64,000 bases of DNA from Octopus bimaculoides (lineage: Eukaryota): contig NC_068997.1 in assembly GCF_001194135.2 (NCBI RefSeq), forward strand, positions 3,548,244 to 3,612,243, given 5' to 3'. The translations under genes and the position numbers were made by a program. The notes under the pieces were generated by a model. It saw only the letters and a program-made list of their open reading frames with translations, searched no databases and was not told where the DNA came from. Shown in pieces: positions 1 through 58,353 of the stretch. Position 1 is the first letter of the stretch. Every line of letters begins with the position of its first letter.

Positions 1-3000
1 AGCGCCAACAATCACTTCAGAAACAACCATCACAACTGAACAAAACACTTCTACAAAACCGATAACGGATATAACAAAACGAACTACAGCTACAGAACTG
101 ACGAGCACAAAAAAGCCAAGAACCATTAAAGAATCCAGAACCACAACAGAACCAACAACCACAACAGAACAAACAACCACAACAGCACAAACAGCCACAG
201 AAGGAGACGCAACCACAAGAAAACCAACAACCACTACAGAGCCATTGACCACAACAGAACCAACGACCACAACAGCACAAACAGCCACAGGAGAAGACAC
301 AACCGCAAGAAAACCAACAACCACAAGAGAACCAACAACCACAACAGCACAAACAGCCACAGAAGAAGACACAACCACAAGAAAGCCAACAACCACTACA
401 GAGCCATTAACCGCAACAGAACCAACAACCACAACAGAACCAACAAGCACAACAGCACAAACAGCCACAGAAGAAGACACAACCACAAGAAAACCAACAA
501 CCACTACAGAGCCATTAACCACAACAGAACCAACAACCACAACAGAACCAACAACCACAACAGCACAAACAGCCACAGAAGCAGACGCAACCACAGGAAA
601 ACCAACAACAACTACAGAGCCATTAACCACAACAGAACCAACAACNNNNNNNNNNNNNNNNNNNNNNNNNNNNNNNNNNNNNNNNNNNNNNNNNNNNNNN
701 NNNNNNNNNNNNNNNNNNNNNNNNNNNNNNNNNNNNNNNNNNNNNCAACCACAACAGAATCAACAACCACAACAGAACCAACAACCACAACAGAATCAGC
801 GATTACAACTGAAGCAACAACTATAACAGAACCAACAACCACAATCATATCTACAATTGCATCAAAATCAACAACCACAACAAAACCAGCAGCCACGACA
901 GTACCAACAACCACAACGCAACGAATAACTACAATAGAACTAACAACGGAGCCAGCGTCAGTAACTACTGCGGTAACAACATACGCCACGGCCTTACCAA
1001 CAACACACTCAAAACAACCAAATGAAACAATGCATCCTATATTAACAAGCAGAACTGTTCTCATAGCTGCGACATCTTCGGTACCAACAACAACCACAAC
1101 AGAAGCAGCATCAAACACATCCTCAAAACTAAGGACGACAAAAACCACTTCTACTCCACCCATGAGAACCACGCTGCCAACAACCACATCACTACCATCA
1201 AAAAACATAACTGTACAAATATCAACTAACAGAACAGAAGTAAGACATATCACAACTGACACAACAAAAAGCACTGCAGATTTAACAAACACAACACCAC
1301 AAAGTACAACGACTAAACAGACTGCAATATCAAACACAACATCGGCAACAATAATTGCAACACATCCATCAACATCCTCCACCGAACTAGCAATAGCTGA
1401 TACTAAAATTGTGCCAACAACGACAACCACTGCTAGACTAACAAACATAAGCACGACTGGAATAATATTTTCCACAAGGTCTGCAACATCAGCACGATCA
1501 AAAATGCTGCCAACTGCCCTTGATTCTACGCCAACAACAACAAAGCAGACCGCAAAAACCTCAACTGTACCAAAATCAACAATGAGGCTGGATACATTAG
1601 CACCAACAACAACAGCTGCAACCACTACAATTATATCAACAACGGGAACAATGCCATTAAGAAAACTAAAATCACAAACAACAATATCAACAGTGACAGC
1701 AAAACCCACAGCAAATCTAGTGACAAGAAAGCCCACAATAGTACCAACAATATCAATTCGGACAACAGTACCAGCGACAATAAAAACCACAAAGGTACCA
1801 ACCACAAAAACGAGACCCACAACAGTACCAACAACACCAACAACCATTACAACTGTACCAAAAACAGCAAAATTCACAACAGTACCAACAACAACAAATC
1901 CGACAACAGTACCAGCGACAATAAAAACCACAAAGGTACCAACCACAAAAACGAGACCCACAACAGTACCAACAACACCAACAACCACTATAACTGTACC
2001 AAAAACAGCGAAATTCACAACAGTACCAACAACAACAAATCCGACAACAGTACCAGCGACAATAAAAACCACAAAGGTACCAACCACAAAAACAAGACCC
2101 ACAACAGTACAAACAACAACAAATCCGACAACAGTACCAGCGACAATAAAAACCACAAAGGTACCAACCACAAAAACGAGACCCACAACAGTACCAACAA
2201 CACCAACAACCACTACAACTGTATCAAAAACAGCAAAATTCACAACAGTACCAACAACAACAAATCCGACAACAGTACCAGCGACAATAAAAANNNNNNN
2301 NNNCCACAACAGTACAAACAACAACAAATCCGACAACAGTACCAGCGACAATAAAAACCACAAAGGTGCCAACCACAAAGACGAGACCCACAACAGTACC
2401 AATAACACCAACAACCACTACAACTGTACCAAAAACAGCAAAATTCACAACAGTACAAACAACAACAAATCCGACAACAGTACCAGCGACAATAAAAACC
2501 ACAAAGGTACCAACCACAAAAACGAGACCCACAACAGTACCAACAACACCAACAACCACTACAACTGTACCAAAAACAGCGAAATTCACAACAGTACCAA
2601 CAACAACAAATCCGACAACAGTACCAGCGACAATAAAAACCACAAAGTNNNNNNNNNNNNNNNNNNNNNNNNNNNNNNNNNNNNNNNNNNNNNNNNNNNN
2701 NNNNNNNNNNNNNNNNNNNNNNNNNNNNNNNNNNNNNNNNNNNNNNNNNNNNNNNNNNNNNNNNNNNNNNNNNNNNNNNNNNNNNNNNNNNNNNNNNNNN
2801 NNNNNNNNNNNNNNNNNNNNNNNNNNNNNNNNNNNNNNNNNNNNNNNNNNNNNNNNNNNNNNNNNNNNNNNNNNNNNNNNNNNNNNNNNNNNNNNNNNNN
2901 NNNNNNNNNNNNNNNNNNNNNNNNNNNNNNNNNNNNNNNNNNNNNNNNNNNNNNNNNNNNNNNNNNNNNNNNNNNNNNNNNNNNNNNNNNNNNNNNNNNN

Positions 3001-57506: not shown

Positions 57507-58353
57507 CTGTGGAGGAGCGTAGGCTCGAAACATCAAAGACTTTTCAATTCTTCCCGGGCGTTAAAATGATATACCTGCTTGTTGCTCCCTCACTTGTCTT
57601 TTGTTTTCTATTAGTATTTGTGTCAGTTGCCAATGCGTCAGTCTCTAAATCGATTACCACTGTGTATTGTCCGTGTGTGCGTGAGTGCGTGCCTGCTTCC
57701 GAGTGTGTGTGTGTGTGTGTGTGTGTGTGTGTGTGTGTGTGTGTGTGTGTGTGTGTGTGTGTGTGTGTGTAAGTACATATGATTTTACGTTTTGTTCACG
57801 CTCAGCTGCCACTATTATTCTCAGAAATGTCTAAGACAACCAATTCTTATATTTTCTTCACATGTAAAAGACATTGATGAGTGTAAACCGGAGGCAAACA
57901 ACTGCAACCAAATTTGCCGAAACAACCAAGGTTCTTATGAATGTTTCTGTGAAAGATTTTATTCCCGGCTTCCCGATGGCAAAACTTGCATCCAAGGTAA
58001 ACCATTCTTTTGATATATAACCATTCTTTCTTTGCTCAAAAAGTGTTGTGTATATTTCATTGAACGAGTAGTTCAATAGATCTAATGAAGTAGCTTGATT
58101 AATTCAGGATACTATTATAACATACTTAATCATATACAGACATGCATAGCCATACACATACACGTGAGAAACCGTTTATACCGGCACATTTTTTTATCAC
58201 TCCGTTTCTTTTTTCGTCCTCCATTTTTCCCCTCTTATCCCTTTATGTGAAAGAGCATAGGCTCGAAACGTGAGAGACTTTTCCATTCCTCCCCAGCGTT
58301 AAACGAATATACCTGCCTGTTATTCCCTTTCTTGTCTTTGTCTTTTGTTTTCT
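57507..58353 (+). repeat. Pair of ~105-bp dispersed repeats (57507-57609 and 58245-58353) flanking exon 24; probable Penelope-like element termini
   Basis: Shared GAGCRTAGGCTCGAAAC.T....GACTTTT...GCGTTAAA...ATACCTGC.TGTT...GTCTTTTGTTTTCT. Family assignment is inference. Confidence 0.6.
57871..57996 (+). CDS. Exon 24: calcium-binding EGF (last exon found; gene continues beyond window)
   Basis: gtaaaag| DIDECKPEANNCNQICRNNQGSYECFCERFYSRLPDGKTCIQ G|GTAAAC; both splice sites are weaker than the others. Confidence 0.9.

Follow-up and report, generated by a model that had tools for sequence, protein, structure and literature searches.

In vertebrate MUC4, the repeat region lies in one giant exon just upstream of the exons that encode the NIDO domain, and the gene has ~25 exons. 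The protein consists of repeats rich in proline, threonine, and serine (PTS), followed by NIDO, AMOP, a VWD domain with a GDPH motif, and EGF-like modules (PMC8660890). Cleavage at GDPH generates two subunits: alpha, which includes NIDO and AMOP, and beta, which includes a truncated VWD and three EGFs (PMC8660890). Here, we describe a gene with the same domain order in a 64,000-nt stretch of the Octopus bimaculoides genome (NCBI RefSeq assembly GCF_001194135.2, contig NC_068997.1, positions 3,548,244 to 3,612,243 of the forward strand). We refer to this whole stretch as “the window”. The window probably contains the greater part of one intact MUC4-type mucin gene on the plus strand, the product of which would be O-glycosylated, probably self-cleaved at GDPH, EGF-stalked, and, in the best explanation, anchored in the membrane.

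Several other described proteins share parts of this architecture. First, cnidarian mucin4-like proteins (Acropora B3EWY9 and relatives; Actinia tenebrosa) have NIDO, AMOP, VWD, and EGF, an order matched in the octopus gene with its AMOP-like segment (PMC4890752, PMC3748352, PMC9080433). Coral forms have N-terminal TSP1 repeats and have been recovered from the skeleton; in anemone forms, CUB, ZP, FN3, or SEA domains may be present. No cnidarian form has been reported with a PTS exon of >1,400 residues and a 15-EGF array. Second, Drosophila Mesh and vertebrate SUSD2 have an AMOP-VWD core, comparable to the AMOP-like segment and VWD here, with NIDO also being present in Mesh. Unlike in the octopus gene, an Ig-like E-set domain separates NIDO from AMOP in Mesh and a Sushi domain follows its VWD, and neither a PTS region nor an EGF array has been described for it. 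Third, SNED1 is an elongated protein that combines NIDO with ~15 EGF or calcium-binding EGF modules (10.1101/2020.07.27.223107). In SNED1, NIDO directly precedes the EGFs, with no PTS region, AMOP, or VWD, and there are follistatin, Sushi, and FN3 domains; in the octopus gene, by contrast, an AMOP-like segment, VWD, and C8-3 separate NIDO from the EGFs, and no Sushi or FN3 domain is seen in the window. Lastly, gel-forming mucins and FCGBP-type proteins have repeated VWD-C8-TIL units and a C-terminal cystine knot, whereas the octopus gene has a single VWD and no TIL match.

The closest sequences compared are octopus proteins: “Mucin-4-like” A0A7E6EUU4 (LOC115213197) and two “Mucin-like proteins”, A0A6P7T8E9 (LOC115221006, 1,413 residues) and A0A7E6EVN8 (LOC115213503, 1,229 residues), were all detected in the skin mucus of Octopus vulgaris (PMC11431876 and its supplements). 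InterPro NIDO and VWF-D domains are listed for A0A7E6EUU4 and A0A6P7T8E9, and NIDO only for A0A7E6EVN8 (PMC11431876). EGF modules are seen in both Mucin-like proteins.

A 24-exon gene

The window is AT-rich (37% GC), with 15 gaps filled by N, many dinucleotide microsatellites, and interspersed repeats. Open frames on its plus strand carry evident NIDO, VWD, and EGF sequence. The gene model was built blind to an earlier exon list, using seed domains, a three-frame reading of the intervals between them, and a list of AG and GT splice sites with their phases. The final model consists of 24 exons on the plus strand, spanning positions 1 to 57996 (Table 1). All acceptors are AG and all donors are GT; phases are consistent throughout, and the spliced product of the 24 exons has zero stop codons. 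Exons 2 to 24 encode 1,351 residues, 108 of them Cys. A scan for the EGF cysteine pattern gave 16 matches on the plus strand vs none on the minus strand. We conclude that the gene is real, intact, and well supported. Its layout, with a giant repeat exon just ahead of the NIDO exons, resembles that of MUC4, a gene of ~25 exons.

An earlier annotation of the same DNA, made from the letters and a list of open reading frames (ORFs) and referred to here as the sequence-only reading, had also proposed 24 phase-consistent exons. The independent rebuild arrives at the same number and at the same terminal donor (57996/GT, with the slash marking the exon boundary). The earlier annotation described exons 2, 9, 11, 15, 17, 20, 21, and 23 as invisible among the ORFs, and these exons are indeed too short for a list of ORFs of at least 60 residues, as is exon 19. 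Its proposed architecture runs from a PTS region through NIDO, AMOP, and VWD to a long EGF array, and these parts are present, except that the segment abutting NIDO is AMOP-like and falls below the Pfam threshold.

An initial version of the model had 23 exons and no stop codon, and in this version the VWD domain matched in two separate pieces. For this reason, the 3.2-kb intron between the two pieces was searched, and exon 8 was recovered by listing the open phase 1-1 exons within it. A longer form of exon 8 (acceptor 15627) was rejected because it lowers the VWD score and splits the match; a candidate for the middle of VWD at ~16790–16950 was rejected because it has no strong phase-compatible splice sites. 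A search for further phase 1-1 Cys-rich exons in the other large introns gave only translations of microsatellites.

The NIDO-to-C8-3 core

Four consecutive segments make up the core of the protein. NIDO matches Pfam PF06119 with 84.4 bits (E 1.3e-23) over profile positions 2–184 of 186. With exon 8 included, VWD matches PF00094 in a single stretch over profile positions 3–155 of 156, and the score rises from 32.3 to 37 bits (gathering score 22.9). VWD begins GAFGDPH, with the GDPH motif at model residue 382, and ends TRGLLGVVDGNPDNDFQAPDG; matches to sequences in the PDB are to VWD domains of FCGBP and MUC5AC, covering the GDPH and GL(L/C)G..DDF motifs. VWD is followed by a match to the “Mucin-4-like C8-3” domain (C8-3_MUC4, PF23263; 28–29.6 bits vs a gathering score of 25). 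This MUC4-specific Pfam marker was absent from the sequence-only reading and lends further support to the MUC4-like architecture that was proposed there. A linker of ~100 residues with no Pfam match follows C8-3.

The segment between NIDO and VWD is, by its length, position, and cysteine framework, AMOP-like. It has ten Cys in the framework C..W, CPC, C, CCY, CC, C, C, and lies immediately before VWD. The NIDO match ends at residue 234, just ~10 residues ahead of the first AMOP-like Cys, so that the segment sits where AMOP lies in MUC4. The AMOP-like Cys are all in register with the NIDO-adjacent region of the two octopus Mucin-like proteins, whose own AMOP regions, truncated in the first ~400 residues that were compared, likewise do not pass the Pfam AMOP model. 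Two splice variants differ within this segment. Variant A (11381/12229) has the stronger splice sites and scores 108 bits against the octopus paralogues vs 105 bits for variant B. Variant B (11373/12200; donor AAG/GTGTCA, acceptor ttccaag/) adds seven residues in frame, with VQHNSFLRMQ replacing GVR before the CCY motif. Variant B, with its weaker splice sites, is retained as an alternative.

The spacing of NIDO and the AMOP-like segment also bears on whether the gene could be orthologous to insect Mesh or to SUSD2, which would make the protein a cell-cell junction or adhesion receptor rather than a mucin. The (NIDO-)AMOP-VWD core is common to these proteins, and Mesh is the best-studied invertebrate protein to carry it (10.1101/2020.11.10.376210). 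However, ~10 residues leave no room for an Ig-like E-set domain between NIDO and the AMOP-like segment, and neither Ig nor Sushi domains gave a Pfam match in the full model (E ≤ 0.01) or its sub-segments (E ≤ 10); there is no Sushi domain after VWD. Moreover, the octopus gene has a giant PTS exon and 15 EGFs, neither of which is described for Mesh, and it matches the Pfam C8-3_MUC4 domain. Orthology to Mesh or SUSD2 is therefore highly improbable, and Mesh itself is excluded by the lack of an Ig-like domain at that position and of a Sushi domain. TIL domains likewise had no Pfam match in the model, the VWD is single, and the only C8 is of the MUC4 subtype.

Homologs of the core were sought with exon 3 among 1.8 billion representative proteins. 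There were five weak matches, one of which is a spurious bacterial repeat protein and another an exon-sized ORF from Logan (ERR3431203). Positions 225–590 of the corresponding Logan contig (L001, 1,634 nt) align with window positions 7807–8140 and contain a homologous NIDO exon from another sample, the acceptor and donor of which coincide with those of exon 3; this lends independent support to the exon model. The similarity begins at the exon 3 acceptor (...Q/VHTDGFIIIK in the contig vs /IHTDGFLIIK in the window) and fades just past the donor (SE/V). In tblastx, the two halves of the exon have 75% and 46% amino acid identity, with no match at the nucleotide level. The exon thus belongs either to a paralogue or, in a distant species, to an orthologue.

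The EGF array and the 3′ end

Downstream of the linker, we count 15 EGF modules, the number that the sequence-only reading had given as a minimum. Pfam reports EGF_CA ×8 (E 1.7e-56), cEGF ×9, and FXa_inhibition ×7. Eight of the modules have both the D/N-x-D/N-E/Q-C start and the C-x-D/N-x4-F/Y-x-C-x-C hydroxylation consensus; these predicted calcium-binding EGFs fall into four groups of one to three (EGFs 3–4; 6; 8–9; 13–15). The 13 EGF exons are given as all phase 1-1, although exon 12, which encodes the end of the linker and EGF 1, is entered as 2-1. Nine assembly gaps lie in the EGF region, all of them intronic and flanked by microsatellites. Since a hidden phase 1-1 exon at an intronic gap would preserve the reading frame, 15 EGFs is a lower bound. 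The array is the main architectural difference from MUC4: at least 15 EGFs (eight calcium-binding, two laminin/MEGF-type) vs three.

Exon 24 ends at a phase-1 donor, so at least one further exon must follow it. A search of positions 57997–64000 found no recognizable exon, transmembrane segment, or terminal exon. The string “HVDECV” at 63900–63925 was considered as the start of the next calcium-binding EGF exon and was rejected, since a stop codon follows at once; it is either a chance occurrence or a decayed exon fragment.

The mucin exon and its assembly gaps

Exon 1 encodes the mucin domain. The visible part is 1,455 residues long, which is a lower bound, and consists of 43% Thr, 12% Pro, and 5% Ser, with no Cys. 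It is divided by four assembly gaps (646–745, 2294–2303, 2649–3013, and 3498–4079) into five gap-free blocks (2–645, 748–2293, 2306–2648, 3016–3497, and 4080–5436), each of which has exactly one stop-free Thr-rich frame (39–48% Thr). There are two arrays of tandem repeats: an 18-nt repeat encoding six residues (TTEPTT) at 139–947, and a 141-nt repeat encoding 47 residues at 1734–4542. These repeat units are unrelated to those of MUC4.

The 18-nt repeat is present on both sides of the gap at 646–745, and the 141-nt repeat on both sides of the other three. Because the same repeat resumes beyond each gap, the gaps look like collapsed repeat copies. The register of the 47-residue repeat predicts the amount of missing DNA: 90 + 141n nt for the gap at 2294–2303, 66 + 141n nt for that at 2649–3013, and 63 + 141n nt for that at 3498–4079. 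Hence, the gap at 2294–2303, written as 10 N, cannot be 10 nt long. The repeat register is consistent with, but does not prove, a single continuous exon 1; as assembled, the frame is broken across the gaps.

Two further gaps lie close to the exons for the mucin domain and the core, in intron 1 (5580–5625) and intron 6 (12667–13354). Both are flanked by (TG)n/(TA)n, the adjoining splice sites are outside the gaps, and the phases match. At the exon 6/7 junction, no segment of a domain profile is missing: the AMOP-like segment ends “CSNYVMP”, and VWD starts at profile position 3.

Other long ORFs overlap the mucin exon. On the minus strand, there are ORFs of 600 and 661 residues over positions 612–5464, both rich in Val and Gly, and a second open frame on the plus strand is rich in Asn, His, and Lys. 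These spurious ORFs arise because the A/C-rich repeat is free of stop codons in several frames. We rejected the long minus-strand ORFs as genes, as they are compositional artifacts that mirror the ACN-rich repeat. An ORF-based annotator could nonetheless call spurious ORFs that overlap the mucin exon.

One gene or two

The mucin exon and the NIDO exons could belong to separate genes. In that case, a secreted mucin encoded by another gene would end with the PTS exon as its 3′ part, and exons 2–24 would form a NIDO-AMOP-VWD-EGF gene with a first exon, for the signal peptide, that lies upstream of the PTS exon or whose splicing skips it. Human MUC4 splice forms such as MUC4/Y omit the repeat exon. 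The use of MUC4/Y, a MUC4 splice variant, as a smaller model (PMC5354666) and the existence of octopus paralogues of 1,229–1,413 residues that carry little or no PTS sequence both favor two genes, as does the fact that the 5436/6455 junction is a prediction. Several features of the junction argue otherwise. First, the Thr-rich frame runs directly into a consensus donor (CA/GTAAGT, position 5437, phase 1) that sits exactly at the Thr-rich end, and no in-frame stop occurs between the PTS region and this donor or from there to the next gap. Second, exon 2 starts in phase 1 at an acceptor with a pyrimidine tract ahead of it, contains no ATG, and has an in-frame stop upstream. Third, a search of the 1-kb intron 1 for an ATG-initiated, hydrophobic, phase-compatible exon that could encode a signal peptide found none. 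Lastly, a PTS region directly upstream of NIDO is the arrangement of MUC4 (PMC8660890), and the octopus paralogue A0A6P7T8E9 has, in the portion of its sequence covered, a short Thr-rich stretch between signal peptide and NIDO, which we count in favor of one gene. Taken together, two genes seem improbable.

Comparison with octopus relatives

Over ~320 residues of NIDO and the AMOP-like segment, the model has 27.5% identity to the two octopus Mucin-like proteins, with scores of 108 and 91 bits (first ~400 residues of each). Given this level of identity, we take them to be paralogues or distant relatives of the window gene. In the sequence portions covered, the Mucin-like and Mucin-4-like proteins have little or no PTS region, and they are far shorter than the product of the window gene; in A0A7E6EVN8, EGF modules are N-terminal to NIDO, unlike in the window gene. 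Six 7-residue strings from the model had no match in the searched portions of the skin-mucus supplements, a result that is not conclusive.

Proposed mechanism and anchorage

By analogy with MUC4 (PMC8660890), the Thr/Pro repeats would be densely O-glycosylated, producing an extended glycan brush. The precursor would self-cleave at the Asp-Pro bond of GDPH, and the alpha subunit (mucin domain, NIDO, and AMOP) would stay non-covalently bound to the beta subunit (the rest of VWD, C8-3, and the EGF array). The EGF array would serve as a spacer and a stalk for interactions, stiff wherever calcium-binding EGFs adjoin through one-residue linkers, and would hold the brush off the surface of an epithelial cell, e.g., in skin, sucker, gut, or gill. 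A C-terminal transmembrane segment beyond the window would anchor the protein.

The protein could instead be secreted and associated with the extracellular matrix, like SNED1, fibulins, and the coral skeletal “mucin-like” protein. Its EGF array would then continue into matrix modules, and mucus, egg coats, cuticle-like layers, or a biomineral matrix would incorporate the protein. The window shows no transmembrane segment; SNED1, with NIDO and 15 EGF modules, is secreted (10.1101/2020.07.27.223107); and coral mucin4-like proteins are found in the skeletal matrix (PMC4890752, PMC3748352). The closest sequences in the PDB to the EGF array are those of NELL2, thrombomodulin, ADGRE5, Notch1, and LDLR; this resemblance is generic and uninformative on anchorage. 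However, the 3′ end of the gene lies beyond the window, so the missing transmembrane segment is no evidence for secretion. MUC4, Mesh, and the coral mucin-like protein are treated as transmembrane proteins, and the covered sequence of octopus A0A7E6EVN8 yields a peptide resembling a membrane span (TAAIVIGVVLGILCLLLIGVIVYIIR). For these two reasons, we favor membrane tethering as the most likely anchorage, and consider a secreted matrix protein unlikely, though less so than the division of the locus into two genes.

Weighing the evidence

Several observations weigh against the reading of the locus as most of a single, intact gene for a MUC4-type, EGF-stalked membrane mucin. (i) The 5′ edge of the window falls within the PTS exon and its 3′ edge in an intron, such that signal peptide, transmembrane segment, and stop codon lie outside it. 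(ii) The evidence for the exon 1/exon 2 junction is the quality of its splice sites and the match in phase, and phases agree by chance in one-third of cases. (iii) The Thr-rich frame of exon 1 shifts from block to block (position mod 3 = 2, 1, 2, 1, 0) and is out of frame across all four gaps as written; such breaks are to be expected if the stated gap lengths are placeholders. (iv) Because of the A/C-rich repeat, further frames also stay open for long distances, on the minus strand as well, meaning that openness alone is weak evidence for a coding exon. (v) The match to Pfam AMOP (PF03782) reaches 16.6 bits (E 0.009), below the gathering score of 25, and does so for splice variant B, with no match for variant A; the segment is too divergent for Pfam, unlike the AMOP of MUC4. 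(vi) Seven of the 15 EGFs, five plain and two laminin/MEGF-type, lack the calcium-binding consensus. The “Ca2+-stiffened rod” of the sequence-only reading is therefore apt only in part, as modules that lack the consensus interrupt the predicted calcium-binding stretches. (vii) O-glycosylation, GDPH cleavage, and calcium binding are all predicted by analogy with MUC4. In addition, the likeness to MUC4 consists of domain order and the C8-3 match and does not in itself imply orthology.

Exons and other features of the window

Table 1. Exons of the octopus mucin gene. Positions are those of the window; phases are given as acceptor-donor.
Exon	Position	Strand	Phase	Content
1	1..5436	+	donor 1	PTS/mucin exon, 5′ end beyond window; donor CA/GTAAGT at 5437
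2	6455..6597	+	1-0	N-terminal lead-in to NIDO (KLLPFGSS...GDDVIS...KRIW); acceptor ttttaccaccag/, donor TGG/gtaagt
3	7816..8136	+	0-0	NIDO core (IAPFWADA...); Pfam NIDO
4	10049..10256	+	0-1	NIDO continued
5	11128..11381	+	1-0	NIDO end and first half of AMOP-like segment (CMKW...CPCNLLQAKKD...C); alternative donor 11374
6	12229..12433	+	0-1	Second half of AMOP-like segment (ICCYD...VCC...YC...DC); alternative acceptor 12200
7	13520..13777	+	1-1	VWD start, GDPH motif (GAFGDPHIQTIDGKFYTFNGWGEF); Pfam VWD, PDB matches
8	15714..15845	+	1-1	VWD middle (IIIIANGIDFTVQFVNDENF...)
9	17005..17208	+	1-1	VWD end (TRGLLGVVDGNPDNDFQAPDG)
10	17581..17826	+	1-1	Mucin-4-like C8-3 domain, Pfam PF23263
11	20840..20996	+	1-2	Linker with no Pfam match; 5′ boundary uncertain (20822 or 20840)
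12	21721..21875	+	2-1	Linker end and most of EGF 1
13	22824..22982	+	1-1	Last Cys of EGF 1, then EGF 2; Pfam EGF
14	24092..24211	+		Calcium-binding EGF 3 (DVDEC...)
15	25446..25571	+		Calcium-binding EGF 4
16	26332..26454	+		EGF 5, no calcium-binding consensus
17	26863..26985	+		Calcium-binding EGF 6
18	28311..28568	+		Laminin/MEGF-type EGF 7 and calcium-binding EGF 8
19	34081..34212	+		Calcium-binding EGF 9
20	34860..34976	+		EGF 10, no calcium-binding consensus
21	45617..45736	+		EGF 11, no calcium-binding consensus
22	47289..47534	+		Laminin/MEGF-type EGF 12 and calcium-binding EGF 13
23	52325..52444	+		Calcium-binding EGF 14
24	57871..57996	+	donor 1	Calcium-binding EGF 15; donor AAG/gtaaac

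The window contains two families of interspersed repeats. The first is ~380 nt long, with 88–94% identity between copies, all of which are intronic: 14002–14382 (+), 20096–20476 (−), 27455–27824 (+), and 52770–53140 (+); a fragment of ~100 nt is found at 11576–11676. This repeat looks SINE-like (short interspersed nuclear element), with no tRNA found by ARAGORN and no Rfam match. The second family is more diverged, with copies of ~130–220 nt with 72–80% identity, at 10327–10460, 31506–31650, 41075–41298, 42186–42860 (approximately three tandem copies), 46641–46857, and 61983–62225. In translation, it gives a recurring “KGKVDLGGI”-like motif that is found in many spurious ORFs. Every intronic assembly gap in the window sits at a microsatellite. 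An (ATT/ATA)n run at 10257–10340, right after the exon 4 donor, reads as >20 consecutive Ile in frame.

A 117-nt sequence is present twice with 100% identity, at 34975–35091 and 36841–36957. The first copy takes in the final two bases of exon 20 and extends from there into the intron; the second lies just past a gap (36426–36596) and low-complexity sequence, with no exon body ahead of it. This duplication is probably an artifact of assembly or gap filling rather than real.

A Pfam scan of seven intronic ORFs, covering both strands, gave no real match, leaving a mariner remnant that had been guessed at 29.8–30.1 kb unsupported. Rfam and tRNA scans of the window found nothing.

Implications

Proteins of this family are already known in cephalopods, and the window locus is one of its large members, notable for the size of its PTS exon and the length of its EGF array; it is no new kind of protein or mechanism. 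The claim of lineage-specific novelty in the sequence-only reading was overstated, since NIDO/VWD mucin-like proteins are already annotated in octopus and the NIDO-AMOP-VWD-EGF order is found in cnidarians; its proposed function, as an epithelial mucus, glycocalyx, or adhesion protein, is speculative. An earlier survey placed the deepest MUC4-like protein at Xenopus (PMC4948705), a claim that has since been weakened by “mucin4-like” annotations in cnidarians and octopus. The locus adds a protostome case of the MUC4 order (PTS, NIDO, AMOP-like segment, VWD with GDPH, C8-3, and EGFs), in the form of a hand-curated 24-exon model of a very large invertebrate MUC4-type mucin gene. With eight or nine exons that are too short to appear as ORFs and a collapsed repeat exon, automatic annotation could split, truncate, or miss the gene.

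A bolder possibility, which we put forward only tentatively and consider unlikely, is that protostomes have a genuine MUC4 counterpart in this gene, which would encode a membrane mucin with a variable-number tandem repeat in a single exon, a GDPH-cleaved NIDO-AMOP-VWD-C8-3 core, and a beta subunit with a stalk of at least 15 EGFs, a combination seen in no characterized protein. Such a counterpart would combine MUC4-type and SNED1/fibrillin-type design, and cephalopod annotations may miss or split it. If this is true, membrane mucins of the MUC4 type, giant repeat exon included, would be older than the divergence of protostomes and deuterostomes, and their elaboration in cephalopods would have served the mucus-covered skin or suckers. 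The protein encoded by the window gene is a candidate structural component of cephalopod skin, sucker, or gut mucus.

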